This document shows, piece after piece, positions 30,224 to 45,039 of a stretch of 64,000 nucleotides of DNA. This DNA comes from Rebecca billardiae RCC1528 (lineage: Eukaryota; Protista; Haptophyta), in NCBI GenBank assembly GCA_965240325.2, contig OZ251246.1, positions 62,001 to 126,000 of the forward strand, given 5' to 3'. Within the stretch, counting starts at the first letter, position 1. Each line of letters begins with the position of its first letter. A model generated the notes under the pieces. That model did not search any database and had not been told where the DNA came from. It was given only the letters and a program-made list of their open reading frames with translations. The position numbers were made by a program, and so were the translations under genes.

Positions 30224-33200
30224 TCAGCCCCGGAGGGCAACGGCGGCGCGCGCGCGCGCACGAGAGAGAGAGGGCGCGCGGGAGGCGCGCGCGCGCGCGC
30301 GCACCGCGGCGAGGCCGGGCGGGATGGCGGCGGCGATGTCTTCGTACGCCGCGGCGCGCCTCCGCTCCTGCGCGCGCACCCACGCGTCGTGCCACAGCCG
30401 CGCGCGCCGCCGCTCGAGCGCGTTGGCCGAGGCGGGGAAGGCGGCGGCGAGCGGCGGCGGCGCGGCGCCCGGCTCCGAGCCGACGGCGCCGCCGCCCGAG
30501 CGCCGGCCGGCGGCGAGCGCGGCGACGATCGCGGCGGCGCGCGCGTCGGCGGGCGCGTCGGCCGCGGCCGCGCCGGCCGGCCCGCGCGGCGGCGGCGCGC
30601 CGGGCGGCGGCGCGTCGGCGGACGCGGACGCGCCCGCCGACGCGGCGACGGCGCGCGCGGGCGTGGCCGCGCCGGCGGGCTCCGCGCCCGGCCCGCCGCC
30701 GTCGGTCGTCGAGGCGACGGGCGGCGCGCCGCGCGCCGAGCCGCGCGCGCTGCCGCCGCCGCTGCGCGCGCTGCCGCCGCCGCTGCGCGTGCGCGCGCTG
30801 CTCGCGCCCGAGCCGGCCGCGCCGCCGCCTGCCGCCTGCCGCTGCGCGGGGCGGCGCGCGTCCGCGCCCGTGCGGCCGACGACGCGCACGTCGTCTGCGC
30901 CGGCCGCGGCCGCGGCGCCGCCGGCCGCGGCGCCGTCGGTCGTCGAGGCGTCGGCGGGCGGCGCGGCGCGCGCCGAGCTCCCGCCTGCGCGCGGCGTGGG
31001 CGCGGGCTCGTCCGCGTGCGCGACGGCGCCGAGCGCGAGCGGCGGCGGGCGGCGCGGCGGCGGCGGCGCGTCGGACGCCGGCGCGCCGCCCGCCGCCGCC
31101 GCCGCCGCCGCCGCCTCGCCCGCCGCCTCCGCGTCCGAGGCCTTGGGCTCGGCGCCGTAGCACGGGTGCTCCCCCCTGCGCACGCGCCGCGCGCACACGC
31201 ACGCCCAGCACAGCAGCAGCACCAGCACCGCGCCGCCGATCAGCGCGTACAGCCACGCAAAGCCGAGCGAGACGCCGGAGGCCAGGCCGTCCACCGCCAC
31301 CTCGAACGGAGTGCGCGCCTCGGCCGACTGGCCCTGCACCTCGTCCGCCTCCTCGGCGGGGGCGCGCGCGGAGGAGGCGCCGTCCTCCTCGTCCTCGCCC
31401 TGCGCGTCCGAGCCGGCGCCGCCCGGCGGCGGCGGCGACGGCGGCGGCGACGGCGGCGGCGACGGCGGCGGGCGCGGCGGCGGGCGCGGCGGCGGCGCCG
31501 GCGGCGGGCTCGGCGGCGGGCTCGGCGGCGGAGCCGGCGGCGGCGGGCTGGGCGGCGGGCCCGGCGGCGGGCCCGGCGGCGGGCTCGGCGGCGGCGAGGG
31601 CGGCGGGCTCGGCGGGCTGGGCGGCGGGAACGGCTCGGTGCGCGGCGGCGGCGGCGGCGCCGGCGGCGGGCTCGGCGGCGGGCTCGGCGGCGGAGCCGGC
31701 GGCGGCGCGTACACGCACCCGCCGTCCGAGAAGTGCGCGCTCGACTCGTAGTTGGCCGCGGCCGGGTCGACGCAGCCGGCGTAGCGGCACGAGCCGTCGT
31801 CGAGCTGCGCGCTGGGGAGGTAGTTGGCCGCGGCCGAGTCGGTGCAGCCCGCCACGGGGTACACGCAGCTGCCGTCGTCCACCGTCGCGCTCGAGTCGAA
31901 GTTGGTCGCGGCCGAGGCGGCGCACCCAAAGTGCACGCAGCTGCCGTCGTCCGCCGCCGCGGCCGACGCGTAGTTGGGCGCGGCCGAGTCGGTGCAGCCC
32001 GCCACGGCGTACACGCACGTGCCGTCGTTCACGTTGGCCGTCGAGTCGTAGTTCGCCGCGACCGGCGCGGTGCAGCCGCGGTAGATGCACGAGCCGTCGT
32101 CCGCCGCCGCGGCGGAGAGGTAGTTCTCCGCGGCCGCGTCGGTGCAGCCCGCGCGCGCGTACGCGCACGAGCCGTCGAGCACGGAGGCGGCCGAGTCGTA
32201 GTTGGCCGCGGCGGTGTCGGTGCAGCCGGCGCGCACGCACGAGCCGTCGTCCCCGCCCGCGTCCGAGTCGTAGTTCTCCGCGGCCGAGTCGGTGCAGCCC
32301 TGCGCGACGAACGCGCACGAGCCGTCGTCCGAGTCCGCCGCCGAGTCGTAGTTGGTCGCGTTGGGCACGGTGCAGCCCGGCGCGAGCCGCCGGCCGTGCT
32401 GCTGCGGCGGCGGCTGCGGCTGCGGCGGCGGCTGGAGCAGCAGCCGCCGCCGGCCCGGCGCGTACACGCAGCCGGCCGGCTGCTGCACGTTGGCGGCCGA
32501 GTTGTAGTTGTACGCGGCCGAGTCGGTGCAGCCCGCGCGCGCAAACACGCACGCGCCGGCCGCGTAGTGCGTCGCGCTCGAGTCGAAGTTGAGCGCGCCG
32601 GCGGCGGCGCAGCCGAACGCGGGCACGATGCAGCCGCCGTCGTCCTCCGCCGCGTCGGACGCGTAGTTGAGCGCGGACGGCTCGGTGCAGCCGCGCGCCG
32701 GGTACACGCAGCCGCCGTCGTCGAGCGTCGCGGCCGAGTTGTAGTTGGACGCGCTCGGCGCCATGCAGCCGCCGAGCGGCAGCACGCAGCTGCCGTCGTC
32801 CACGGCCGCGGCGGACGCGTAGTTGAGCGCGGACGAGTCGGTGCAGCCGCCGAGCGCGAAGACGCAGCTGCCGTCGTTCACGCTCGCGCTCGAGTCGTAG
32901 TTGAGCGCGGCGCGCGCGACGCAGCCCGGCGCCGCGTACGCGCAGCCGCCGTCGTCCGCCGTCGCGTCCGACCAGTAGTTGGCCGCGGCCGCGTCGGTGC
33001 AGCCCTGCCGCGCGTACGCGCACGCGCCCGCGCCCGGCAGCTGCACCGCCGCGCCCGAGTCGTAGTTGGACGCGAGCGGGTCGAGGCAGCCGTACGACGG
33101 CGGCGGCGGCGACGGCGGCGGCGACGGCGGCGGCGGCGACGGCGGCGGCGACGGCGGCGGCGGCGACGGCGGCGGCGCGGGCGGAGGCGGCGACGGCGGC

Positions 33201-36200
33201 GGAGCGGGCGAGGGCGAGGGCGGCGGCGACGGCGGCGGCGACGGCGGCGGCGACGGCGGCGGCGGCGACGGCGGCGGCGACGGCGGCGGCGGCGACGGCG
33301 GCGGCGCGGGCGGAGGCGGCGACGGCGGCGGAGCGGGCGAGGGCGACGGCGGCGGCGACGGCGGCGGCGACGGCGGCGGCGACGGCGAGGGCGACGGCGG
33401 CGGCGACGGCGGCGGCGAGGGCGGCGGCGGGCTCGGCGGCGGGCTCGGCGGCGGGCTCGGCGGCGGGCTCGGCGGCGGCGAGGGCGGCGGCAACGGCGGC
33501 GGCGAGGGCGGCGGCGGCGAGGGCGGCGGTGAGGGCGGCGGCGAGGGCGGAGGCGACGGAGGCGGCGCGGGCGGCGAGGGCGGTGGGAACGGCTCGGTGC
33601 GCGGCGGCGGCGGTGGCTGCGGCGGCGGGCTCGGCGGCGGCGAGGGCGGCGGGCTCGGCGGCGGGCTCGGCGGCGGAACCGGCGGCGGCGGGCTCGGCGG
33701 CGGGCTCGGCGGCGGGCGCGGCGGCGGCGTCGGCGGCGGTGACGGCGGCAGGCTCGGCGGGGGCGACGGCGGCGGCGACGGCGGCGGCGGGCGTGGAGGC
33801 GGGCGTGGCGGTGGCGAGGGCGGCGGCGAGGGCGGCGGCGAGGGCGGCGGACGTGGCGGCGGCGGCGACGGCGGCGGCGACGGCGGCGCGGCAGGCGGCG
33901 GCGACGGGGGCGGCGACGGCGGCGGCGCGGGCGGGGGCGAGGGCGGAGGCGACGGCGGCGGGCTCGGCGGCGAGGGCGGCGGGAACGGCTCGGTGCGCGG
34001 CGGCGGCGGCGGCTGCGGCGGCGGGCTCGGCGGCGGCAAGGGCGGCGGCGAAGGCGGAGGGCTCGGCGGCGGCGACGGCGGCGGCGTAGGCGGCGGCGGG
34101 CTCGGCGGCGGGCGCGGCGGCGGGCGCGGCGGCGGGCGCGGTGGCGGCGACGGCGGCGGCGACGGCGGTGGCGATGGTGGTGGCGAAGGGGGCGGCGCCG
34201 GCACGCCCGTGGGCGGCGGCGGGCTCGGCGGCGGGCTCGGCGGCGGGCGCGGCGGCGGGCTCGGCGGCAGGCGCGGCGGCGAGCTCGGCGGCGGCGCCGG
34301 CGGCGGCAAGGGTGGCGGCGTGGGCGGCGGACGTGGCGGCGGCGGCGAGGGCGGTGGTGACGGCGGCGGCAAGGGCGGCGGCGACGGCGGTGGGCTTGGC
34401 GGCGAGGGCGGCGGGAACGGCTCGGTGCGCGGCGGCGGCGGCGGCTGCGGCGGCGGGCTCGGCGGCGGCGAGGGCGGCGGCAACGGCGGCGGCGAGGGCG
34501 GCGGCGGCGAGGGCGGCGGGCTCGGCGGCGGCGACGGCGGCGGCGTAGGCGGTGGCGGACTCGGCGGCGGGCTCGGCGGTGGGCTCGGCGGCGGCGAGGG
34601 CGGCGGCGACGGCGAGGGCGACGGCGGTGGGAACGGCTCGGTGCGCGGCGGCGGCGGCGGCTGCGGCGGCGGGCTCGGCAGCGGCGACGGCGGCGGCGCG
34701 GGCGGAGGCGGCGACGGCGGCGGCGACGGCGGTGGCGACGGCGAGGGCGACGGCGGCGGCGACGGCGGCGGCGACGGCGGCGGCGAGGGCGGCGGCGATG
34801 GTGGTGGCGAAGGGGGCGGCGCCGGCACGGCCGTGGGCGGCGGCGGGCTCGGCGGCGGGCTCGGCGGCGGGCTCGGCGGCGGGCTCGGCGGCAGGCGCGG
34901 CAGTGGGCTAGGCGGCGGCGCCGGCGGCGGCGCCGGCGGCGGCGAGGGTGGCGGCGAGGGTGGCGGCGTGGGCGGCGGACGTGGCGGCGGCGGCGGCGGC
35001 AAGGGCGGCGGCGACGGCGGCGGGCTCGGCGGCGAGGGCGGCGGGAACGGCTCGGTGCGCGGCGGCGGCGGCGGCTGCGGCGGCGGGCTCGGCGGCGGCT
35101 GCGGCGGCGGGCTCGGCGGCGGGCTCGGCGGCGGGCTCGGCGGCGGCGGGCTCGGCGGCGGGCTCGGCGGCGCGCGCGGTGGCGGCGACGGCGGCGGCGA
35201 CGGCGGCGGCGACGGTGGCGGCGACGGTGGCGGCGCCGGCACGGCCGTGGGCGGCGGCGGGCTCGGCGGCGGGCTCGGCGGCGGGCTCGGCGGCGGGCTC
35301 GGCGGCAGGCGCGGCAGTGGGCTCGGCGGCGGCGCCGGCGGCGGCGCCGGCGGCGGCGAGGGTGGCGGCGAGGGTGGCGGCGTGGGCGGCGGACGTGGCG
35401 GCGGCGGCGGCGGCAAGGGCGGCGGCGACGGCGGCGGGCTCGGCGGCGAGGGCGGCGGGAACGGCTCGGTGCGCGGCGGCGGCGGCGGCTGCGGCGGCGG
35501 GCTCGGCGGCGGCTGCGGCGGCGGACTCGGCGGCGGGAACGGCGGCGGGCTGGGAGGCGGGCTCGGCGGCGGAGATGGTGGCGGCGGGCTCGGCGGCGGG
35601 CGCGGCGGCGACGGCGGCGGTGAAGGCGGTGGGCTCGGCGGCGGACTCGGCGGCGGGCTCGGCGGCGGGGACGGCGGCGGGCTCGGCGGCGGGCTCGGCG
35701 GCGGCCGCGGCCGCGGCGGTGGCGACGGCGGCGACGGCGGAGGGCTTGGAGGCGGCGACGGCGGCGGCGACGGCGGCGCGGGCGGCGGCGAGGGTGGCGG
35801 CACCGGCGGCGGCGGCGACGGCGGCGGTGACGGCGGCGGGAGCGGAGGCGGCGACGGCGGCGGGCTCGGCGGCACGGGCGGCGGCGGCGATGGTGCCGGC
35901 GGCGGCGGCGGCGCGGGCGGCGCCGACGGCGGCGGGCTGGGCGGCGGCGAGGGCGGCGGCGAGGGCGGCAGGCTCGGCGGCGGCGAGGGCGGCGACAGCG
36001 GCGGCGAGGGCGGCGGCGAGGGCGGCGGGCTCGGCGGCGCGCCCGGCGGCGGCGAGGGCGGCGGCGAGGGCGGCGAGGGCGGCGGGAACGGCTCGGTGCG
36101 CGGCGGCGGCGGCGGCGCGGGCGGCGGGCTGGGCGGCGGCGAGGGCGGCGGGCTCGGCGGCGGCGAGGGCGGCGGCAAGGGGGGCGGTGGGCTGGGCGGC

Positions 36201-39200
36201 GGGCGCGGCGGCGTACTGGGTGGCGGGCTGGGCGGCGGCGCGGGCGGCGGCGCCGGTGGGGGCGAGGGCGGAGGAGTAGGCGCGCCCACAGCGGGCGGCG
36301 GGCTCGGCGGCGGAGAGGGCGGCGGGCTCGGCGGTGGGCTCGGTGGCGGCCTCGGCGGCGGGCTCGGCGGCGGGCTCGGCGGCAAGGCCGGCGGCGGCGA
36401 CGGCGGAGGCCGTGGCGACGGCGGCGACGGCGGAGGGCTTGGAGGCGGCGACGGCGGCGGCGACGGCGGCGCGGGCGGCGGCGAGGGCGGCGGCGCCGGC
36501 GGAGGCGGCGACGGCGGCGGTGACGGCGGTGGGCTGGGCGGCGGCGAGGGCGGCGCCGAAGGCGGCACGGGCGGCGGCGGCGATGGCACTGGCGGAGGCG
36601 GCGGCGCGGGTGGCGCCGACGGCGGCGGGCTGGGCGGCGGCGCGGGCGGCGGCGAGGGCGGCAGGCTCGGCGGCGGCGAGGGGGGCGGGAGCGGCGGTGA
36701 GGGCGGGGGCGGGCTCGGCGGCGCGCCTGGCGGCGGCGAGGGTGGTGGCGACGGCGGCGATGGCGGCGGGAACGGATCGGTGCGCGGCGGCGGCGGCGGC
36801 GCGGGCGGCGGGCTCGGCGGCGGCGCGGGCGGCGGGCTCGGCGGTGGCAAGGGCGGCGGCGAGGGCGGCGGTGGGCTGGGCGGCGGGCGCGGCGGCGGCC
36901 GCGGCGGCGGGCTGGGCGGCGGGCGCGGCGGCGGCGCGGGCGGCAGCGACGGCGGAGGCGTCGGCACCGCGGCGGGCGGCGGGCTCGGAGGCGGCGCGGG
37001 TGGTGGCGACGGCGGCGGCGACGGCGCGCCGGCGGCCGGCGGCGGGCTGGGCGGTGGCGCAGGCGGCGCGGACGGTGGTGGCGAGGGCGGCGGCGACGGT
37101 GGCGGTGTGGGCGGTGGAATCGGCGGCGGCGCAGGGGGCGGCATCCGCGGCGGCGGCGACGGTGGCGGCGTAGGCGGCGGCGTGGGCGGTGGCGGGCTCG
37201 GCGGCGGGCTCGGCGGCGGGCTGGGCGGCGGCGAGGGCGGCGCCGACGGCGGCACGGGCGGCGGCGGCGATGGCACCGGCGGCGGCGGCGGCGCGGGTGG
37301 CGCCGACGGCGGCGGGCTGGGCGGCGGCGAGGGCGGCGGCGAGGGCGGCAGGCTCGGCGGCGGCGAGGGCGGCGGCAGCGGCGGCGAGGGGGGAGGCGAG
37401 GGCGGCGGGCTCGGCGGCGGTGACGGCGGCGGCGACGGCGGCGGCGAGGGCGGCGAGGGCGGTGGCAACGGCTCGGTGCGCGGCGGCGGCGGCGGCGCGG
37501 GCGGCGGGCTCGGCGGCGGCGAGGGCGGCGGGCTCGGCGGCGGCGAGGGCGGCGGCGAGGGCGGCGGTGGGCTGAGCGGCGGGCTCGGCGGCGGGCGGGG
37601 CGGCGCACTCGGTGGCGGGCTGGGCGGCGGCGCGGGCGGCGGCGACGGCGGTGGCGTTGGCGCGCCGGCCGCGAGCGGCGGGCTCGGCGGCGAGCTCGGC
37701 GGCGGGCTCGGCGGCGGCGACGGCGGCGGCGACGGCGGCGGCGACGGCGGCGGTGAGGGCGCGCCGGAAGCGGGCGGCGGGCTGGGCGGCGGGCTCGGCG
37801 GCGGCGACGGCGGCGGCGACGGCGGCGGCGACGGCGGTGGTGAGGGCGGCGGGCTCGGCGGTGGGCTGGGCGGTGGGGGGCTCGGTGGCGGCGACGGTGG
37901 CGGCGACGGTGGCGGGCTCGGCGGCGAGGGCGGCGGTGCGGGCGGTGGGCTCGGCGGCGGCGCCGGCGGCGCCGGCGGCGGGAACGGATCGGCGCGCGGC
38001 GGCGGCGGGGGCGCCGGCGGCGGGCTCGGCGGCGGCGCCGGCGGCGGGCTGGGCGGCGGGCTCGGCGGCGGGGCTGGTGGTGGCGGGCTCGGCGGAGGTC
38101 TGGGTGGCGGCCTCGGCGGCGGGTTCGGTGGCGGCGATGGCGGCGGGGACGGCGGCGGCGCGGGCGCCGCCTGCGGCGGCGGGCTCGGCGGTGGGCTCGG
38201 CGGGGCGGCCGGCGGGGGCGAGGGCGGTGGTCGCGGCGGCGGCGCTGGCGGTGGCGACGGCGGCGGCGACGGCGGCGGCGCTGACGTGGGCGGCGGGCTC
38301 GGCGGCGGCGTGGGCGGTGGGAGCGGCGGGGGCGACGGCGGCGGCGCGGGCGGCGGCGCGGGCGGCGGCGACGGCGGTGGCAACGGCGGCGCGGGCGGCG
38401 GCGACGGCGGCGGCGTGGGCGGCGGGAGCGGCGGCGGCGCCGGCGGCGGCGCCGGCGGGCTCGCCGGCGGCGGCGAAGGCGGCGGCGCCGGCGGCGGCGC
38501 CGGCGGGCTCGCGGGCGGCGGCGAGGGCGGCGGCGCGGGCGGCGGGCTCGGCGGCGGCCGCGGCGGCGGGCTCGGCGGCGGGTGCGGCGGCGGCGGGCTC
38601 GGCGGCGGCAGCGGCGCCCCGATCACCGCCGTCGAGAGCAGCGGGCTGAACGTGTACAGGAAGTCGGCGTAGAACTGCGCGGACGAGCCGAGGAACGGGA
38701 ACTTGCGGTCGTCCGCGCCGTTGCCCAGCGCGTCCGTCGTCTCGATCATCACAGCAACGCCCAACGACCCGCTGAGCGTCTGCGGCCACCCGCCGCTCGG
38801 GTACACGCCCACGCTGAACACGCCGTTGGCGTACTCGCCGCGCCCCACCCAGTAGCCTTCGGTCGACGTGCCGTTGTCCGTGCCGTTCACGTACACTGGC
38901 GTGTATGACGCAGCGGCCGCTCCGATCTCGAAGAAGACGCTCGTCTGGCTGTCGTCGGCGACGGTGTTGTCGTCCTTCGTCACGACGACGGACACCACGA
39001 GCGGGTCGCTCGTGCCGACGCCGATTGCGCCCGACGTGATGCTGTAGCTCGTCAGGAAGCGGTACTTGCCCGCGACTGCGCGCAGCAGGTACTGCGCATC
39101 CTGCGCGCCCGTGCTGTTGTCCAGCGTCGGGTCGAGCGCGGACGCGCACGTCGTCAGCCCGGACACGCCGACGATGTACTGCGAGAGCACGCGCACGTCG

Positions 39201-42200
39201 AATGAGGTCAGGGCGCAGTCACCGTTCACATCGCCGGCAACGCCAGCCGAGCAGCCCGAGCACTCCGCCAGCCGCCGCGCGCGCGCCGCCCGGCTCGACT
39301 CGGTCGGCACAAACAGGGGCGGCACGTGCTCAGCGGCCAGCGCGAGCGCGCGCCGCCGGCTGACGGTCGTCGTGAGGCCGCCTGCACCCGCGAAGACGTC
39401 GGCGTTCTGCACGCGCGTCTCGGTCGCGCCCTGCACGGTCACGAGCTCGACGATGCTTCCCGTCAGCGACGTGCTCGCCGAGGACAGCACGTCGAATGTG
39501 ACGGAGCCGATCGAGGCGGCAGTGCCGCTGGTGATCTGCGATGCCGTGTTGCCCACAAACCTGACCTCGTTCAGCGGATCGTTGATCGTGCACTCGGCCC
39601 ACGAGAGCGTGCTGCACGACGTCGCGACCAGGACAGCGCTGTCGATGGCCAGCTCGATCTGGAAGTTGACCAGGTACTCCGAGCCGCCACCCGTGTTCAC
39701 GCGCACGGGCACCGTCAGCGAGTTGCCAGACTGCTGGAACTGCAGTCCGCTCGCTGAGCCGAGGTCCACGTCGTACGTGCCAGGCTGCAGGTTCGCCGTC
39801 ACGTCGAGGGCGTCGGCCGCAGCGCCGGCATCGCGCGACGTCGCGGTGATCGAGTTCGCCGCGTCACGGCTGTTGCCAGCGATCGTCACCACGCCGTTCG
39901 GGTCGACGCCGAGCACGGCCGCGTCGTCGCTCTCAAAGCTGAGCACCTCTGACACGCTCACGTACCCCAGCGACATCAGGTTGGTGTACTGCACGCCGTC
40001 CTCGAGCGTGACGAGCGCACTCAGCGTGCTCGACGTGCCGTTGGTGGCCAGCAGCGACGCGCCGGACGTCAAGCCGCCCAGGCCCAGCGTCAGCGCCGTC
40101 ACCTTCACCGCCGTCGCGTCGACGTAGACGGTGGCTGACGCTGTGAGCGTGCCCCACGTCGCGTTGATGAGCGCAACGCCCGCGCCCACGCCGATGACAG
40201 TGCTGCCCGACGTGGTCGCGACGAGCGTGTTGTTCGACGCCAGCACCATCTCGGCGGCCAGCAGCGTGGGCGAGACCACCGTGCCGTCGCTTAGCGTGGC
40301 CGATGGCGTCGTGGCCGTGCGCTGGAACGTGGTGGACGCGCCGATCAGCCCGAGCGTGTCGTCGTCGAACGTGATCTCGAATGACGCGCCAGCAGCCGTC
40401 ACGACCGGCACCTCGACGAAGCCATTCAGGAGGTACGAGTCGACGAAGACGGTCACGTTGAGCGCAGTGCACGTTGCACCGCTCGCCATCGTCACCTGGT
40501 TCACGCCGTCGAACGTGGCGCACGACGACGGCACCGAGAGCGTGATGTTGGTGCGCGGGTCCGTGGTGAAGTCCACCTGTGACTCGTCTTCAAACGTGAC
40601 CGTGATCGTGACGGTGAGCGACGTGGGCAGCGACGTCGGCGGCTCGGCAGCAGGGTCGCCCGGCACGGTCACCTTGGCGGCCGATGTGCTCACGCCCACG
40701 CTCACCGCGTTCGGCAACTCTAGATCCACGCGCGCGCGGCCCGTCGCGAGCACGGCGCTGCACGAATCAATCCAGCTCGCGTCGAGGAGCAGGCCCTCCT
40801 GCGACGTGGCAAACGTTGCCACGGCAGCCGTCCACGGCGACGATGCGTCTCCCGGCGCACCGACGGTGAGACTCGACGTGCGGCTCGTCAGCGTGACCTC
40901 AGTCGACGGCACGAGCTCGTACGAGCCGTCGCCGAGGTACGCGTACGTGTACACGCTCACCGTCTGCCCTTCGGCCGTGAGCGTCTGCCCGAGAGCAGCC
41001 GACGCGTCGAAGCCGCTCGTCGCACCCACACTCAGCGTCGACGGCGGCGAGTCGACGAACGCGATCGAGTTGAACGCCACGGGCCGGAGCGATGCGACGA
41101 GGCGCTCCACGTCCGTCGACACCACGATCGTCGACGAGATCGACGGGCTCGAGCCGGATGCGCTGATCGCAGCCGAGCCGACGCCCACGCCCGTCACCGT
41201 CACCACGCCGGTCGTGCCGGACGTGAAGATGCTCGCGACGCCGGCGTCGCCCGAGGCGAGCGTCGCCTCGCGTGTCACGTCCACGTTGCTCACCGTGCTC
41301 AGACCCGTGCCGCCAAACGACGCGACGAGGCTGGCCGTCGTCGACTGGAACGCCTGCGTGCCGCACTGGCCGGGCTGCGACGCGCCCTTGATGGCAAAGA
41401 GCGTACCGTACCCGAAGCGGATCTCTGCGGACAGCGGGTGCCACACGCGCAGCGGCACGCTCGCGACCACCGCGCCGCTCGAGACGCGCGTCACGTTCAC
41501 AAGAGTCGTCGCGGCGCCCGACGTGCTCGAGCTGCTCGCCACCACCGTGCACGGCGACCCTGAGCTGATGCCGAGCACGCTCGAGTCGAGCGCGAGGCAC
41601 GAGTAGCCGCTCGACTGAGTGGCAGACGCAGTGGCGGCGCGGCTGTACAGCTCGAGCACGCTGAGCGCGGTGGTCGCGTCGGTGCCGGAGAGCGGCGCGG
41701 TGTTGACTAGCTCGCCCGAGGCGACGTATGCGAGCCAGCCCTGCACCGCCACGGTCTCGACCACGAGCGTGCCGCTCGCTGACGCGCCGTCGTCCGCGTC
41801 GGCAACCACGCCCGCCTGCTCGCTCACGTACACCTGCGTCGCGTCGTTCACGTACTGCTCGATCTCGACCGAGATGGCGCCGGCGTAGCTGCCAGCGGAG
41901 GCACCACCGGCCACGCTCATCGTCAGCGTGATCAGCTCCACGGCCGTACCGGTCACCTGCGCGTTGGTCGTGCCACCGGTGAGCCCCGTCGCGATGATCG
42001 ACACGAGGCCGGCCGCGTTGTCGTTCACCTCCGGTGAGTTGTACGTGCTCGCGACCGACGTGCTGGCGACGCTGAGCACGCTCGAGTTGTACGCAATGTT
42101 GATCTGCCAGGTGATCAGCGCGACGCCACCCGTGTGCGCGTACAACACCAGCTCGAAGCTGTCGCCCGCGAACACGGGCGACTGCGCCATCTGGCCCAGC

Positions 42201-44632
42201 AGGCCGACCGATGGGAGTGTGTACGCGGTCGGGCTCTCGGCGAGCGTGATCGCGCCCGCACGAGAGCACGAGTCGACTGTGCCGCCGCCGTAGTTGAAGT
42301 CGACGAGCACGTCGACGCTGCCCGCTGCGGCCGTGCTGAACCAGCCCGAGCTCACGGTGGCCGAGCACTCGCCCACGCCCGTCGTCGCGCTCGGCGAGCC
42401 GCACGAGAAGCTCTGGTCGGTGCCGCCCACCAGCGACAGCGTCAGGCTCACGCTCAGACCCGTGGTGAGCACGGACGAGCGGTGCGCCGCATCGCGAAGC
42501 TGGTACGCGACGCGCACGCCCGCGCGGTCCACGTACGCCGTCGGCGTGCGCACCGCGCAGTCCACGCTCGCCGCCTGCTCGGCGGTCACGCTGTAGCTGC
42601 TCGCCACGCCGAGATCGATGCCGTGCGACGCGGCGCGCACCGTGCCGGACGCGCCCACAGACGCGCCCGCCAAGAAGCCCGCCGTCAAGTTGTGCCGGTT
42701 GCCGGCGCTGCTGACCGTGCCGTGCACAGCCGCGCCCGGGCTGCTGCTCGTCGTGTACAGCGTGATCTGAGCGTCCGAGACCAGCGCATCCGCGCCGAAC
42801 ACGAACGGCGGAAGCGGCGGCGACGGCGGCGACGGCGGCGGGAATGGCAGCGTGCGCGGCGGCGGCGGGCTTGGCGGCGACGGCGGAGGGAGCGGCGGCG
42901 GCGGGCTGGGCGGCGGCGCGGGTGGTGGGCTCGGCGGCGGCGATGGCGGCGGGCGCGGCTGCGGAGGCGGCGGCGACGGCGGCGGCGAAGGTGGCGGCGA
43001 CGGCGGAGGGCTCGGTGGCGGCGTGGGTGGCGGCGCGGGCGGGGGCGAGGGTGGCGGCGCGGGCGGCGGCGGCGACGGCGGCGGCGTCGGCGGCGGGCGC
43101 GGCGGCGGCGATGGCGGCGCCAGCGGCGGCGGTGATGGCGGCGGGAGCGGCGGCGGGGAAGGCGGCGGGGACGGCGGCGGCGACGGCGGCGGCGACGGCG
43201 GCGGCGACGGCGGTGCCGCCGGCGGCGGCGACGGGGGCGGCGAAGGCGGCGGCGGGCTCGGCGGCGGGCGCGGCGGCGGCGACGGCGGTGGCGTGGGCGG
43301 CGGGCTCGGCGGCGGCGCAGGCGGCTCGCGCGGCGGCGGGCTGGGCGGCGGGCTCGGTGGTGGGGCGGGCGGCGGAGAGGGCGGCAGGCGCGGTGGCGGC
43401 GGCAAGGGCGGCGGGCGCGGTGGCGGCGAGGGCGGCGGCGACGGTGGCGGCGAGGGCGGGGGGCTTGGCGGCGGAGGCGAGGGCGGCGGCGACGGCGGGG
43501 GCGAGGGCGGCGGACGCGGCGGCGGCGGCGATGGCGGCGGCGACGGCGGCGGCGATGGCGGCGGGGCAGGCGGCGGCGACGGGGGCGCCGACGGGGGCGG
43601 GGGCGACGGCGGGGGCGACGGCGGCGACGACGGCGGCGGCGACGGCGGCGGCGATGGTGGCGGGCTCGGCGGCAGGCCGGGCGGCGGCGAGGGCGGCGAC
43701 GGAGGCGGGAAGGGCTCCGTGCGCGGCGGCGGCGGCGGCGCCGGCGGCGGGCTCGGCGGGGGCGACGGCGGGGGTGGCTGCGGCGGCGGGCTCGGCGGTG
43801 GCGACGGGGGCGGGCTCGGAGGCGGCGCGGGCGGCGGCGAGGGCGGCGGTGGCGAGGGCGGAGGGCTCGGCGGTGGGCCGGGCGGCGGGCTGGGCGGCGG
43901 CGACGGCGGCGGCGACGGCGGCGGCAGCGGCGGGCTCGGCGGCGGTGGGGTTGGCGGGGTCGGCGGAGGCCGCGGCGGCGGGGGCGACGGGGTGGGCGGC
44001 GGCGGTGGGAAGGGTGGCGCCTTGGGCGGCGGGCTCGGCGGCGGGCGCGGGGGCGGCGCTGGCGGTGTCGGCGACGGCGGTGACGGCGGCGGCGACGGCG
44101 GCGGCGAGGGTGGAGCGGGCGGCGGCGGAGACGGCGCTGGAGGCGGCGGCGGCGCGGGCGGCAGGCTGGGCGGCGGGCTCGGTGGCTGGCTCGGCGGCGG
44201 CGAGGGCGGTGGGCTCGGCGGCGGCGAGGGTGGCGGGACGGGCGGCGCGGGCGGTGGTGACGGTGGCGGCCGCGGCGCGGGCGGCGGCGACGGCGGCGGC
44301 GACGGCGGCGGCGACTGCGGAGGCGGCCGCGGCGGTGGCGGGCTGGGGTGCGGCGGCGGCGGCGGGTCCTCCTGAAGGGCTCGGCCGTGCTGCCGAGGCC
44401 GCGCCGTCGACGCGGGGACCACGCTCCGCCCGCCGCCCGCCTGCGGCTGGTCGGCGGGCGCGGCGGCCGCTTGCTGCGCCGCGAGGGGCGCGAGCGTGCC
44501 GACGGGCGCGCCCGCGAGGGCGAGGATGGCGAGCGCGCGCACGAAGGCGAGCGCGACGCGTGCGCAGTGCGCACGGCTCGACGGGCAGCGCCGTTCGCCG
44601 CCGCGCGGCCACGGGTGGCCGCGCGCCACCAT
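30224..44632 (-). CDS. Giant (~4800 aa) type I membrane surface protein: PPSP stalks, TMEM132-like cohesin/Ig module, second cohesin-like domain, dockerin-like domain, 17 GCTD Cys repeats, TM helix
   Basis: Single open frame; first ATG at 44632; signal RVALAFVRALAILALAGA; globular region ~42805-38615; Cys repeats ~33095-31710; TM FAWLYALIGGAVLVLLLCWACVC ~31265-31195. Confidence 0.85.
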   Translation of the reverse strand: MVARGHPWPRGGERRCPSSRAHCARVALAFVRALAILALAGAPVGTLAPLAAQQAAAAPADQPQAGGGRSVVPASTARPRQHGRALQEDPPPPPHPSPPPPRPPPQSPPPSPPPSPPPAPRPPPSPPPAPPVPPPSPPPSPPPSPPPSQPPSPPPSLPPAPPPPPAPSPPPPAPPSPPPSPPPSPPSPTPPAPPPRPPPSPPPKAPPFPPPPPTPSPPPPRPPPTPPTPPPPSPPLPPPSPPPSPPPSPPPGPPPSPPPSPPPPSPPPAPPPSPPPSPPPSPPPQPPPPSPPPSPPPAPPPPPRTEPFPPPSPPSPPPGLPPSPPPSPPPSPPPSSPPSPPPSPPPPSAPPSPPPAPPPSPPPSPPPSPPPPRPPPSPPPSPPPSPPPPSPPPSPPPSPPPSPPPRPPPLPPPPRLPPSPPPAPPPSPPPSPPPREPPAPPPSPPPTPPPSPPPRPPPSPPPPSPPPSPPPAAPPSPPPSPPPSPPPSPPPSPPPLPPPSPPPLAPPSPPPRPPPTPPPSPPPPAPPPSPPPAPPPTPPPSPPPSPPPSPPPSPPPPQPRPPPSPPPSPPPAPPPSPPPPLPPPSPPSPPPPRTLPFPPPSPPSPPLPPFVFGADALVSDAQITLYTTSSSPGAAVHGTVSSAGNRHNLTAGFLAGASVGASGTVRAASHGIDLGVASSYSVTAEQAASVDCAVRTPTAYVDRAGVRVAYQLRDAAHRSSVLTTGLSVSLTLSLVGGTDQSFSCGSPSATTGVGECSATVSSGWFSTAAAGSVDVLVDFNYGGGTVDSCSRAGAITLAESPTAYTLPSVGLLGQMAQSPVFAGDSFELVLYAHTGGVALITWQINIAYNSSVLSVASTSVASTYNSPEVNDNAAGLVSIIATGLTGGTTNAQVTGTAVELITLTMSVAGGASAGSYAGAISVEIEQYVNDATQVYVSEQAGVVADADDGASASGTLVVETVAVQGWLAYVASGELVNTAPLSGTDATTALSVLELYSRAATASATQSSGYSCLALDSSVLGISSGSPCTVVASSSSTSGAATTLVNVTRVSSGAVVASVPLRVWHPLSAEIRFGYGTLFAIKGASQPGQCGTQAFQSTTASLVASFGGTGLSTVSNVDVTREATLASGDAGVASIFTSGTTGVVTVTGVGVGSAAISASGSSPSISSTIVVSTDVERLVASLRPVAFNSIAFVDSPPSTLSVGATSGFDASAALGQTLTAEGQTVSVYTYAYLGDGSYELVPSTEVTLTSRTSSLTVGAPGDASSPWTAAVATFATSQEGLLLDASWIDSCSAVLATGRARVDLELPNAVSVGVSTSAAKVTVPGDPAAEPPTSLPTSLTVTITVTFEDESQVDFTTDPRTNITLSVPSSCATFDGVNQVTMASGATCTALNVTVFVDSYLLNGFVEVPVVTAAGASFEITFDDDTLGLIGASTTFQRTATTPSATLSDGTVVSPTLLAAEMVLASNNTLVATTSGSTVIGVGAGVALINATWGTLTASATVYVDATAVKVTALTLGLGGLTSGASLLATNGTSSTLSALVTLEDGVQYTNLMSLGYVSVSEVLSFESDDAAVLGVDPNGVVTIAGNSRDAANSITATSRDAGAAADALDVTANLQPGTYDVDLGSASGLQFQQSGNSLTVPVRVNTGGGSEYLVNFQIELAIDSAVLVATSCSTLSWAECTINDPLNEVRFVGNTASQITSGTAASIGSVTFDVLSSASTSLTGSIVELVTVQGATETRVQNADVFAGAGGLTTTVSRRRALALAAEHVPPLFVPTESSRAARARRLAECSGCSAGVAGDVNGDCALTSFDVRVLSQYIVGVSGLTTCASALDPTLDNSTGAQDAQYLLRAVAGKYRFLTSYSITSGAIGVGTSDPLVVSVVVTKDDNTVADDSQTSVFFEIGAAAASYTPVYVNGTDNGTSTEGYWVGRGEYANGVFSVGVYPSGGWPQTLSGSLGVAVMIETTDALGNGADDRKFPFLGSSAQFYADFLYTFSPLLSTAVIGAPLPPPSPPPPHPPPSPPPRPPPSPPPAPPPSPPPASPPAPPPAPPPSPPPASPPAPPPAPPPLPPPTPPPSPPPAPPLPPPSPPPAPPPAPPPSPPPLPPPTPPPSPPPTSAPPPSPPPSPPPAPPPRPPPSPPPAAPPSPPPSPPPQAAPAPPPSPPPSPPPNPPPRPPPRPPPSPPPPAPPPSPPPSPPPAPPPSPPPAPPPPPRADPFPPPAPPAPPPSPPPAPPPSPPSPPPSPPPSPPPSPPPPSPPPSPPPSPPPSPPPSPPPSPPPSPPPSPPPASGAPSPPPSPPPSPPPSPPPSPPPSSPPSPPLAAGAPTPPPSPPPAPPPSPPPSAPPRPPPSPPLSPPPPSPPPSPPPSPPPSPPPSPPPAPPPPPRTEPLPPPSPPSPPPSPPPSPPPSPPPSPPPSPPLPPPSPPPSLPPSPPPSPPPSPPPSAPPAPPPPPVPSPPPPVPPSAPPSPPPSPPPSPPPSPPPPTPPPTPPPSPPPRMPPPAPPPIPPPTPPPSPPPSPPPSAPPAPPPSPPPAAGAPSPPPSPPPAPPPSPPPAAVPTPPPSLPPAPPPRPPPSPPPRPPPRPPPSPPPPSPPPLPPPSPPPAPPPSPPPAPPPPPRTDPFPPPSPPSPPPSPPPGAPPSPPPPSPPLPPPSPPPSLPPSPPPAPPPSPPPSAPPAPPPPPVPSPPPPVPPSAPPSPPPSPPPSPPPSPPPPAPPPSPPPAPPSPPPSPPPSPPPSPPSPRPPPSPPPALPPSPPPSPPPRPPPSPPPSPPPSPPPSPPPAVGAPTPPPSPPPAPPPAPPPSPPPSTPPRPPPSPPPPLPPPSPPPSPPPSPPPSPPPAPPPPPRTEPFPPPSPPSPPPSPPPGAPPSPPPSPPPSPPLSPPSPPPSLPPSPPPSPPPSPPPSAPPAPPPPPAPSPPPPVPPSPPPSPPPLPPPSPPPSPPPPVPPPSPPPAPPSPPPSPPPSPPPSPPSPPPRPRPPPSPPPSPPPSPPPSPPPSPPPSPPPSPPPSPPRPPPSPPPPSPPPSPPPSPPPFPPPSPPPQPPPSPPPQPPPPPRTEPFPPPSPPSPPPSPPPLPPPPPPRPPPTPPPSPPPSPPPAPPPAPPPSPLPRLPPSPPPSPPPSPPPSPPPPTAVPAPPPSPPPSPPPSPPPSPPPRAPPSPPPSPPPPSPPPSPPPSPPPQPPPSPPPQPPPPPRTEPFPPPSPPSPPPSPPPLPPPPPPRPPPTPPPSPPPSPPPAPPPAPPPSPLPRLPPSPPPSPPPSPPPSPPPPTAVPAPPPSPPPSPPPSPPPSPPPSPPPSPSPSPPPSPPPSPPPPAPPPSPLPSPPPQPPPPPRTEPFPPPSPSPSPPPSPPPSPPPSPPPSPPPPTPPPSPPPSPPPSPPPPSPPPLPPPSPPPSPPPQPPPPPRTEPFPPPSPPSPPPSPPPLPPPSPPPSPPPPRPPPTPPPLPPPAPPPSSPPRLPPSPPPRPPPSPPPSPPPPTGVPAPPPSPPPSPPPSPPPSPPPRPPPRPPPRPPPSPPPPTPPPSPPPSPPPSPPPLPPPSPPPQPPPPPRTEPFPPPSPPSPPPSPPPSPPPAPPPSPPPSPPPAAPPSPPPSPPPPRPPPSPPPSPPPSPPPRPPPRPPPPSPPPSPPPSLPPSPPPTPPPRPPPSPPPSPPPPVPPPSPPPSPPPSPPPSPPPQPPPPPRTEPFPPPSPPAPPPSPPPSPPPSPPPSPPPPSPPPLPPPSPPPSPPPSPPPSPPPSPPPPSPPPSPPPSPSPSPPPSPPPSPPPSPSPAPPPSPPPPAPPPSPPPPSPPPSPPPPSPPPSPPPSPPPSPSPAPPPSPPPPAPPPSPPPPSPPPSPPPPSPPPSPPPPSYGCLDPLASNYDSGAAVQLPGAGACAYARQGCTDAAAANYWSDATADDGGCAYAAPGCVARAALNYDSSASVNDGSCVFALGGCTDSSALNYASAAAVDDGSCVLPLGGCMAPSASNYNSAATLDDGGCVYPARGCTEPSALNYASDAAEDDGGCIVPAFGCAAAGALNFDSSATHYAAGACVFARAGCTDSAAYNYNSAANVQQPAGCVYAPGRRRLLLQPPPQPQPPPQQHGRRLAPGCTVPNATNYDSAADSDDGSCAFVAQGCTDSAAENYDSDAGGDDGSCVRAGCTDTAAANYDSAASVLDGSCAYARAGCTDAAAENYLSAAAADDGSCIYRGCTAPVAANYDSTANVNDGTCVYAVAGCTDSAAPNYASAAAADDGSCVHFGCAASAATNFDSSATVDDGSCVYPVAGCTDSAAANYLPSAQLDDGSCRYAGCVDPAAANYESSAHFSDGGCVYAPPPAPPPSPPPSPPPAPPPPPRTEPFPPPSPPSPPPSPPPSPPPGPPPGPPPSPPPPAPPPSPPPSPPPAPPPRPPPRPPPSPPPSPPPSPPPPGGAGSDAQGEDEEDGASSARAPAEEADEVQGQSAEARTPFEVAVDGLASGVSLGFAWLYALIGGAVLVLLLCWACVCARRVRRGEHPCYGAEPKASDAEAAGEAAAAAAAAGGAPASDAPPPPRRPPPLALGAVAHADEPAPTPRAGGSSARAAPPADASTTDGAAAGGAAAAAGADDVRVVGRTGADARRPAQRQAAGGGAAGSGASSARTRSGGGSARSGGGSARGSARGAPPVASTTDGGGPGAEPAGAATPARAVAASAGASASADAPPPGAPPPRGPAGAAAADAPADARAAAIVAALAAGRRSGGGAVGSEPGAAPPPLAAAFPASANALERRRARLWHDAWVRAQERRRAAAYEDIAAAIPPGLAAVRARARASRAPSLSRARARAAVALRG
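33097..38612 (-). repeat. Coding PPSP (extensin/pherophorin-like) repeat with higher-order RTEPFPPPSPP modules
   Basis: About 5.5 kb of GGC-rich repeat. A second stalk lies at 42810-44365 and a short third at 31425-31707. Confidence 0.9.
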
Positions 44633-45039
44633 GTGGAGGGCGAGTGTGGAGCCGCCTGCCACCACGCTGCTGCTAGCTGCTGCTGCGGCGCTGCCACAGG
44701 CGCCTTGGCCACCGTGTCGTGCGCGCCAATATCAAATGAGCGACCCACAAGCTGTTTTTGGCGGAGCTGGCCTTTGCGCGGTTGGGGCGAGTGCCCCCTA
44801 GCTGCCCCTCGATCTCGCCGCGGCGCGGAGGCGATCTCGCGCCGCGCGCCGTTAGTCGACTATTCGGAGCGCGCCAAAATCGGCCGAAAGCCCGTGCCGT
44901 TTGGCTTAAACCCGTAGCAATCCAGTGAAACGGACGAGGTACAAAAGTAGTACGTACGGGAGGAGCCAACCCACCGGAGCCCATCTGCTTTTGGCCGGAT
45001 GATGAAAGCAGTAGCTTTGCGTGGCGGCGAGCGGCGACG

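Follow-up and report, generated by a model that had tools for sequence, protein, structure and literature searches.

Here, we report a globular protein cassette, encoded within a giant open reading frame (ORF) of the haptophyte Rebecca billardiae RCC1528, in which a cohesin domain (cohesin 2) is predicted by structural modeling to bind the dockerin that adjoins it in the same cassette. The DNA analyzed, hereafter the window, is a stretch of 64,000 nucleotides (assembly GCA_965240325.2, contig OZ251246.1, positions 62,001 to 126,000); coordinates given below without a contig refer to the window, and the frame with all of its features lies on the minus strand. The original prediction, made from the sequence alone, had outlined the cassette (38615-42805) as one eukaryotic surface protein that combines cohesin-like and dockerin-like domains with a TMEM132-like module. 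Its contents are found in the places predicted and in one frame, but the span covers no more than the globular middle part of one long frame of 4,813 codons including the stop (30224-44665, checked by translation), in which it lies internally and in frame as exactly the proline-poor part of 1,397 residues. Cohesin-dockerin bonds are among the strongest protein-protein bonds and have been studied almost solely in bacterial cellulosomes, and TMEM132 proteins are disease-linked animal adhesion molecules. The protein described here, from a eukaryote, combines a TMEM132-type module with a bona fide dockerin, and the canonical interface is predicted. The cassette is a conserved unit and belongs to a large public family.

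Cohesin 2 and its adjoining dockerin

The cassette holds two cohesins, cohesin 1 (41750-42214) and cohesin 2 (39359-39781), both of which had been proposed as cohesin-like and both of which are borne out by their folds. In the AlphaFold2 (AF2) model of cohesin 1 with the three immunoglobulin (Ig) domains that follow it, the mean predicted local distance difference test score (pLDDT) is 89.6, and the 42 best rows of the VIA structural comparison for cohesin 1 (model residues 3-157) are all cohesins except two pilin chains, with Z scores to cohesins of 11.1-14.1; the top row has Z 14.1 and a root-mean-square deviation (rmsd) of 2.2 Å over 130 aligned residues. Cohesin 2 matches solved cohesins at Z 10.4-12.9 (rmsd 2.5-3.2 Å, 123-131 residues; Foldseek E ~1e-6), nearly all of its top 28 VIA rows being cohesins, and the matches span types I, II, and III as well as non-cellulosomal cohesins. 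Both domains are, in these models, cohesin folds with the nine-stranded jelly-roll β-sandwich. When the model of cohesin 1 with the Ig domains was searched whole, Foldseek returned mostly Ig arrays (S-layer, cadherin, and NUP210), and the residue ranges used in VIA isolate cohesin 1.

At the sequence level, Pfam Cohesin (PF00963) scores 20 bits on cohesin 1 (E 8.6e-4), under its cut-off of 24.1, and there is no Pfam match on cohesin 2; the cut-off is passed by paralogues at both homologous positions and by 15 of 31 distant homologues (best E 7.5e-14). A profile built on cohesin 2 also picks up cohesin 1 (E 2.1e-6), which shows that both domains are homologous. Against PDB sequences the profiles match weakly, cohesin 1 giving streptavidin noise and ScaB at E 1.1, and cohesin 2 giving ScaB (E 0.16) and Coh5 (E 0.64), so that both domains are identified as cohesins by fold.

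The dockerin (39077-39238, pLDDT 85-95) carries two calcium-loop repeats, DVNGDCALTSFD and DPTLDNSTGAQD, and by its Pfam match and loop residues it is a true two-loop type I dockerin, as the duplicated motif in the original prediction had suggested. When the domain is scored alone, Pfam Dockerin_1 (PF00404) gives 23.5 bits against a cut-off of 22.9 (E 6.7e-5) and covers profile positions 1-55 of 57, i.e., both repeats; the score is 23.3 bits in the genome scan and 17.5 bits when the domain is embedded in the 1,397-residue query. In a search of the PDB with a profile of the paralogous dockerins, 16 of the 18 matches were dockerin modules or dockerin-bearing endoglucanases, several of them matched across both repeats. 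Loop 1 is canonical, and loop 2 has a threonine at position 3. Among 13 aligned paralogous cassettes, D1, D5, and D12 of loop 1 and D5 and D12 of loop 2 are invariant, and the AF2 model places a helix after each loop. The dockerin also has two conserved cysteines, one of them at position 6 of loop 1, so a disulfide is likely.

For the complex prediction, a 150-residue piece with cohesin 2 (39350-39799) was modeled together with the dockerin and two calcium ions, alongside three controls. The score was 0.69 (runs 0.71, 0.62, and 0.69), the best control reached 0.00, the pLDDT of the partners never fell below 78, and all contacts (100%) were shared between the runs. Of 78 solved complexes, 51 reached the mark that we apply to such scores, as did 2 of 108 mismatched pairs; these counts carry over only roughly to the present case, because calcium was included and the chains are eukaryotic. 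On the dockerin side, the predicted interface is formed by helix 1 with loop-1 positions 9-11 (T-S-F), a usage also seen in type I dockerins, and by the end of helix 3; on the cohesin side, it comprises residues 44-47, 69-71, 74, 80-86, 117-120, and 129-131 of the 150-residue piece. Invariant or nearly invariant positions account for nine of the 18 residues in the cohesin-2 interface, compared with 38 of 150 overall (p = 0.015). A monomer model that runs from cohesin 2 through the linker and dockerin to the β-sandwich behind it has a predicted template modeling score (pTM) of 0.82 despite the disordered linker, which agrees with a fixed arrangement of the domains.

The distribution of the two modules in the genome bears on which cohesin a dockerin would meet. 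With our own profile, 25 dockerins were found, all of them in giant cassette frames and 23 directly after a copy of cohesin 2; the same genome scan returned no free-standing dockerin on other types of frame and no dockerin-bearing enzymes. Recruitment of the cellulosome kind was considered and rejected on these counts (25/25 and 23/25). The one-to-one adjacency of cohesin 2 and dockerin argues for pairing within each cassette. Assembly in trans, where the dockerin would bind cohesin 1 or cohesin 2 of another molecule and the rods would polymerize into a mesh or coat, could draw on the two cohesins per dockerin, of which one is always spare, and on the three to nine cassettes per frame in sister genes; a pass of the complex score, moreover, tells neither which member of the family binds nor whether binding is in cis or in trans. 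We nevertheless consider trans assembly unlikely, because cohesin 2 and dockerin are adjacent one to one in 23 of the 25 cases, because the 40-residue linker between them is long enough for cis binding, and because the pTM of the monomer model suggests a fixed intramolecular arrangement. The polymerization between molecules raised in the original prediction is, with this genome-wide adjacency, the less favored of its two suggestions. Three loci depart from the common layout: in two divergent cassettes (C24:909986-918403 and C5:2417807-2425423) the dockerin lies ~5.4 kb from the nearest cohesin-2-type match, and on the minus strand of C8:542461-542907 a frame of 4,835 codons contains a cohesin-2-type match (E 5e-16) with no dockerin match next to it at E ≤ 0.01.

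A basic linker and a possible clasp

Between cohesin 2 and the dockerin lies a 40-residue linker (39239-39358, pLDDT 41-57) with two basic sites, RRRAL (39344-39358) and RARRL (39269-39283). Both sites had been noticed in the original prediction and their aligned positions are strictly conserved; the dockerin, as read from the order of the frame, is on the membrane-proximal side of the linker, as had also been proposed. Arginine makes up only 2.6% of the cassette and RR is confined to the linker, and in the 13 paralogues, ~1,400 residues each, the pattern [RK]R-x(0-1)-L is restricted to the two aligned linker sites. One or both sites are kept in most distant homologues, including that of the green alga Cymbomonas. 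The invariant linker residues are R-x-L, which falls short of a full furin site. RRxL is the site type of S1P/SBT6.1-type subtilases, and kexin or furin types cut at dibasic sites. At least one match to P_proprotein, the proprotein-convertase P-domain, is present in the genome (contig C37), a convertase candidate rather than a demonstrated enzyme of this cleavage; the S1P N-domain model (PF23001) finds no match in the genome and none in the control genomes either, so this negative is uninformative. From the sequence of these sites, the linker of the cassette is probably cleavable.

Taken in order, the cassette reads N-terminal region, cohesin 1, TMEM132-type fourth Ig domain, two Ig-like domains, β-rich middle region, cohesin 2, linker, dockerin, and β-sandwich. 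In the mechanism that we propose, cohesin 2 and the dockerin beside it in the same cassette would form the canonical contact, in which one sheet of the cohesin packs against helix 1 of the dockerin and the end of helix 3, and a subtilase of the secretory pathway would cut the linker at the RRxL sites. A calcium-dependent, non-covalent clasp of high mechanical strength would then keep the N-terminal rod and the TMEM132-like head attached to the membrane-anchored stalk, and cohesin 1 with the Ig domains would remain free for adhesion to other ligands. We give such a clasp within the cassette, across a cleavable linker and with the head held non-covalently on the stalk, about an even chance of being correct. 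A bolder version is a "cut-and-clasp" joint, in which a convertase excises the RRxL-flanked linker, the cis pair bears the load between the adhesive TMEM132-like head and the stalk, and the algal arrangement reflects an ancestral TMEM132/coherin state from which the dockerin was later lost in animals; this we offer tentatively and regard as improbable. The original prediction of a cleavable protein whose released part could redock is thus a reasonable model, given the complex score of 0.69 and the strictly conserved positions of the two basic sites.

Several points weigh against this mechanism. The complex score may be the memory of the model for solved cohesin-dockerin complexes; the dockerin side of the interface shows no excess of conserved positions over the remainder of the domain (4 of 14 residues, as expected by chance); the calcium site of loop 2 may be weaker, because of the threonine at position 3 and a glycine at position 9; and cleavage is seemingly not universal, because four distant homologues have a short connector without a basic site. 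In these homologues (P0143, P0145, P0154, and P0156) the stretch between cohesin 2 and dockerin is short and contains a cysteine (LLDPDCPDG...), and they may be regarded as natural "uncleavable" variants. To our knowledge, non-cellulosomal cohesins and dockerins are often without a known partner. The modules may not pair at all and may instead be structural β-sandwich and calcium-binding spacers, or bind glycans, scales, or partners of the head, with the linker as a flexible hinge. The absence of the basic linker from some homologues and the possible memory effect would fit such a lack of pairing, and so would the statement that vertebrates lack a detectable dockerin (PMC6030884), which leaves their TMEM132 cohesin with no dockerin known to pair with it. 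Set against it are the canonical interface predicted at 0.69 versus 0.00 in the controls, the enrichment of conserved residues at the cohesin-2 interface, the invariant calcium-loop residues, and the strict co-occurrence of cohesin 2 with the dockerin, and we judge the absence of pairing distinctly unlikely.

If the pair binds, a cohesin-dockerin pair from a eukaryote would for the first time have a defined partner. Binding would also provide a concrete hypothesis for the former ligand of TMEM132-type cohesins and a new way of building joints that detach or bear force into the giant surface fibers of algae. If, in addition, the linker is cut and the arrangement is ancestral, the dockerin would stand for a testable class of ligand for the orphan TMEM132 cohesin.

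The TMEM132-type cassette within a giant surface protein

Directly after cohesin 1, an Ig_TMEM132_4th domain (PF16070, 41435-41728) scores 37.4 bits, above the Pfam cut-off of 27 (E 2.6e-9), and the model is matched in 13 of 13 paralogues. ELVNTAPLSG and PLRVWHP, read as TMEM132 motifs in the original prediction, are both inside this match. Homology of the fourth domain with TMEM132 is thus solid, as judged from sequence profiles. Two more Ig-like domains of the Big_2 type follow in the AF2 model (40706-41434) at the places of TMEM132 domains 5 and 6, where the model and VIA both find Ig-like folds, and LigA can be superposed on residues 155-369 of the model (Z 10.0). Next comes a β-rich middle region (39782-40705) with at least one Big_2-type domain around ASNNTLVATTSG. 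The regions of LASGDAGVASI and ASNNTLVATTSG, two of the repeats noticed earlier, match LigA/LigB Big_2 structures in a PDB profile search (E 0.004 to 5e-5), the ASNNTLVATTSG region giving LigA at E 5e-5 and LigB at E 0.003; the letters of the third repeat, FESDDAAVLGVD, are present at their place in the frame. A profile of the middle region also matches a teneurin-like protein in four stretches (E 2.4e-11). Designer PPR proteins, which appeared in the PDB profile search with cohesin 1 and the Ig domains, had zero significant stretches and were dismissed as compositional.

The other TMEM132 models give a less complete picture. TMEM132_3rd (PF23039), the cohesin-like domain of animals, matches no cassette in the genome, and a true cohesin fold is found at that position. 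Ig_TMEM132_5th and 6th (PF23486 and PF23487) have no match in this copy, and their matches in the genome are sub-threshold and in other cassettes. The N-terminal, second, and C-terminal models are absent from the hmmscan of 13 paralogues (E ≤ 0.1) and of 31 homologues (E ≤ 0.01). Among the 31 diverse homologues, Pfam finds the fourth domain in 24, the fifth in four (best E 8.2e-9), the sixth in three, and Dockerin_1 in four. A language-model look-up ranked a chordate TMEM132 cluster second, at 0.89, and is taken as a lead only; the link to animal TMEM132 was made with Pfam models alone. The order of cohesin, fourth domain, Ig, and Ig matches that of TMEM132, and homology over the whole ectodomain is plausible. 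Of the proposed "TMEM132-like module", then, the fourth Ig domain and the order of cohesin followed by Ig domains stand, and the N-terminal, second, third, fifth, sixth, and C-terminal models are unmatched. The cassette is completed at its two ends by regions with no family match, an N-terminal region of 197 residues that is conserved in all paralogues (42215-42805) and a conserved β-sandwich (GVAVMIETTDALG...FPFLGSSA, 38615-39058).

The cassette occurs in ~25 copies in the genome, and sister genes hold three to nine cassettes per frame; in the 72-Mb, 41-contig genome, at least 20 matches to Ig_TMEM132_4th are spread over ~10 giant frames. Fourteen paralogous cassettes that were fetched align full-length and collinear to this one at 34-98% identity, and the ratio of nonsynonymous to synonymous substitution rates (dN/dS) is 0.17-0.39 against five close copies (95-99% nucleotide identity), from which we conclude that the cassette is a constrained coding unit. 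This matters in DNA of such composition: the G+C content of the window is 53-89%, and a frame of this length might be a by-product of 75-88% G+C rather than a single expressed gene, the more so as long frames are also present on both strands and in other frames of the same DNA. The conservation over the full length together with the dN/dS values led us to reject an artifact for the cassette, and the annotated proteins of Diacronema (46% identity), Prymnesium, and Pavlovales sp. (35% each) align to it as well; we regard an artifact as extremely improbable, such doubt being confined to how far the rods and tail reach. Frames of 1,400-1,900 codons (poly-Arg, poly-Gly, and poly-Ala) overlap the rod DNA on both strands (32878-38672) and are by-products of the CCN-rich repeat, not genes. 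Five other cassettes are 95-98% identical in protein (three at C30:168400-204600, one at C1:4923600-4928200, and one at C21:46400-51000), which points to a 4.2-kb unit that was recently duplicated or underwent gene conversion. Three of these copies, with 97.6-98.4% protein identity, sit 60-100 kb off on the contig of the cassette itself.

The cassette is shown to be the middle part of a giant surface protein of type I from a haptophyte-type alga, and we take the whole open frame (30224-44665, first ATG at 44630-44632), as read from the sequence, to be one intronless gene of 14.4 kb for a type I membrane protein. The parts follow one another as putative signal peptide, 521-residue rod, cassette, 1,840-residue rod, cysteine repeats, and putative membrane helix. 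At the N terminus, a basic stretch and then a hydrophobic run, VALAFVRALAILALAG, resemble a signal peptide (44471-44632). The first rod is extensin-like, with SPPP repeats and ~70% proline (42806-44368); the second, longer SPPP rod (33095-38614) is interrupted by PPPPPRTEPFPPPSPPSPPP motifs (PPPPPRTEPF), and proline amounts to ~70-77% across the two. A nearly identical motif, PPPPPR(T/A)(E/D/L)P(F/L)PPPSPPSPPP, breaks the SPPP rods 13 times (ORF residues 312, 601, 2221, 2393, 2625, 2853, 3062, 3200, 3338, 3410, 3554, 3686, and 4339), so that the rods are made of super-repeats of roughly 70-290 residues. The long rod leads into 17 two-cysteine repeats of ~26 residues each (GCTDxAAxNYxSxAxxDDGSC, 31706-33094), which have no Pfam or PDB match and whose nearest ESM-Atlas clusters are uncharacterized haptophyte proteins. 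A short rod separates the repeats from a putative single membrane helix followed by RRVRR (31190-31273), an arrangement that would put the N terminus outside the cell. The remaining Ala/Gly/Arg-rich, low-complexity tail (30227-31189) may partly be read-through of non-coding GC-rich DNA. No Pfam match was found in the C-terminal 992 residues of the frame.

Relatives and comparison with known systems

Outside this genome, the whole cassette aligns to an annotated protein of Prymnesium parvum (35% identity, 97% coverage), to one of Diacronema lutheri (46%), and to one of Pavlovales sp. CCMP2436 (35%). An exhaustive search for homologues returned 5,287 cluster representatives at E ≤ 0.001, 992 of them at E ≤ 1e-30, where a word-based search had found only eight relatives; the best 150 of the 5,287 are all strong matches, most of them nearly over the full cassette. 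The named members that were looked up, from Prymnesium, Diacronema, Pavlovales sp., and the prasinophyte Cymbomonas, are called "hypothetical", uncharacterized, or "TMEM132 fourth domain-containing". Full-text searches of the literature gave no paper that describes cohesin-dockerin modules in haptophytes or a dockerin within a TMEM132-type cassette.

The closest animal counterpart is TMEM132, the architecture of which has been traced to early holozoans (Sanchez-Pulido and Ponting 2018, PMC6030884). The algal protein resembles it (PMC6030884) in being a type I membrane protein in which a cohesin is followed by tandem Big_2-type Ig domains, and in the fourth-domain signature LVNTAPL.G ... VW.P. 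In contrast to animal TMEM132, the algal cassette sits between proline rods of micrometer scale, adds a second cohesin, a basic linker, a dockerin, and a β-sandwich, and in this copy leaves six of the TMEM132 models unmatched, as described above. The rods themselves resemble the extensin-like hydroxyproline-rich glycoproteins of green algae and plants, with long SPPP/SPPPP runs of the Ser-Pro(3-4) kind as rod spacers, whereas the host is haptophyte-type, the protein has a membrane anchor, and its globular head differs in kind.

With the type I pairs of bacterial cellulosomes, the algal modules share matching folds, calcium loops in two repeats, and the canonical interface as predicted. The difference lies in how the partners are deployed, since they are in one chain, one to one, in a eukaryotic host, and no dockerin-bearing enzymes were found in the genome. 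The algal dockerin is also distinct from cellulosomal ones in the cysteine at loop position 6 and a second invariant cysteine, which make a disulfide likely; we know of no disulfide of that kind in bacterial dockerins. As for the proposed joint, its logic of cutting first and holding afterward in a force-sensitive way would be the same as that of SEA-domain mucins, GAIN/GPS adhesion receptors, and furin-cut Notch. The algal version would differ in its holder, which would be a cohesin-dockerin pair, and in the cut, which would be made by a protease at RRxL rather than by autoproteolysis.

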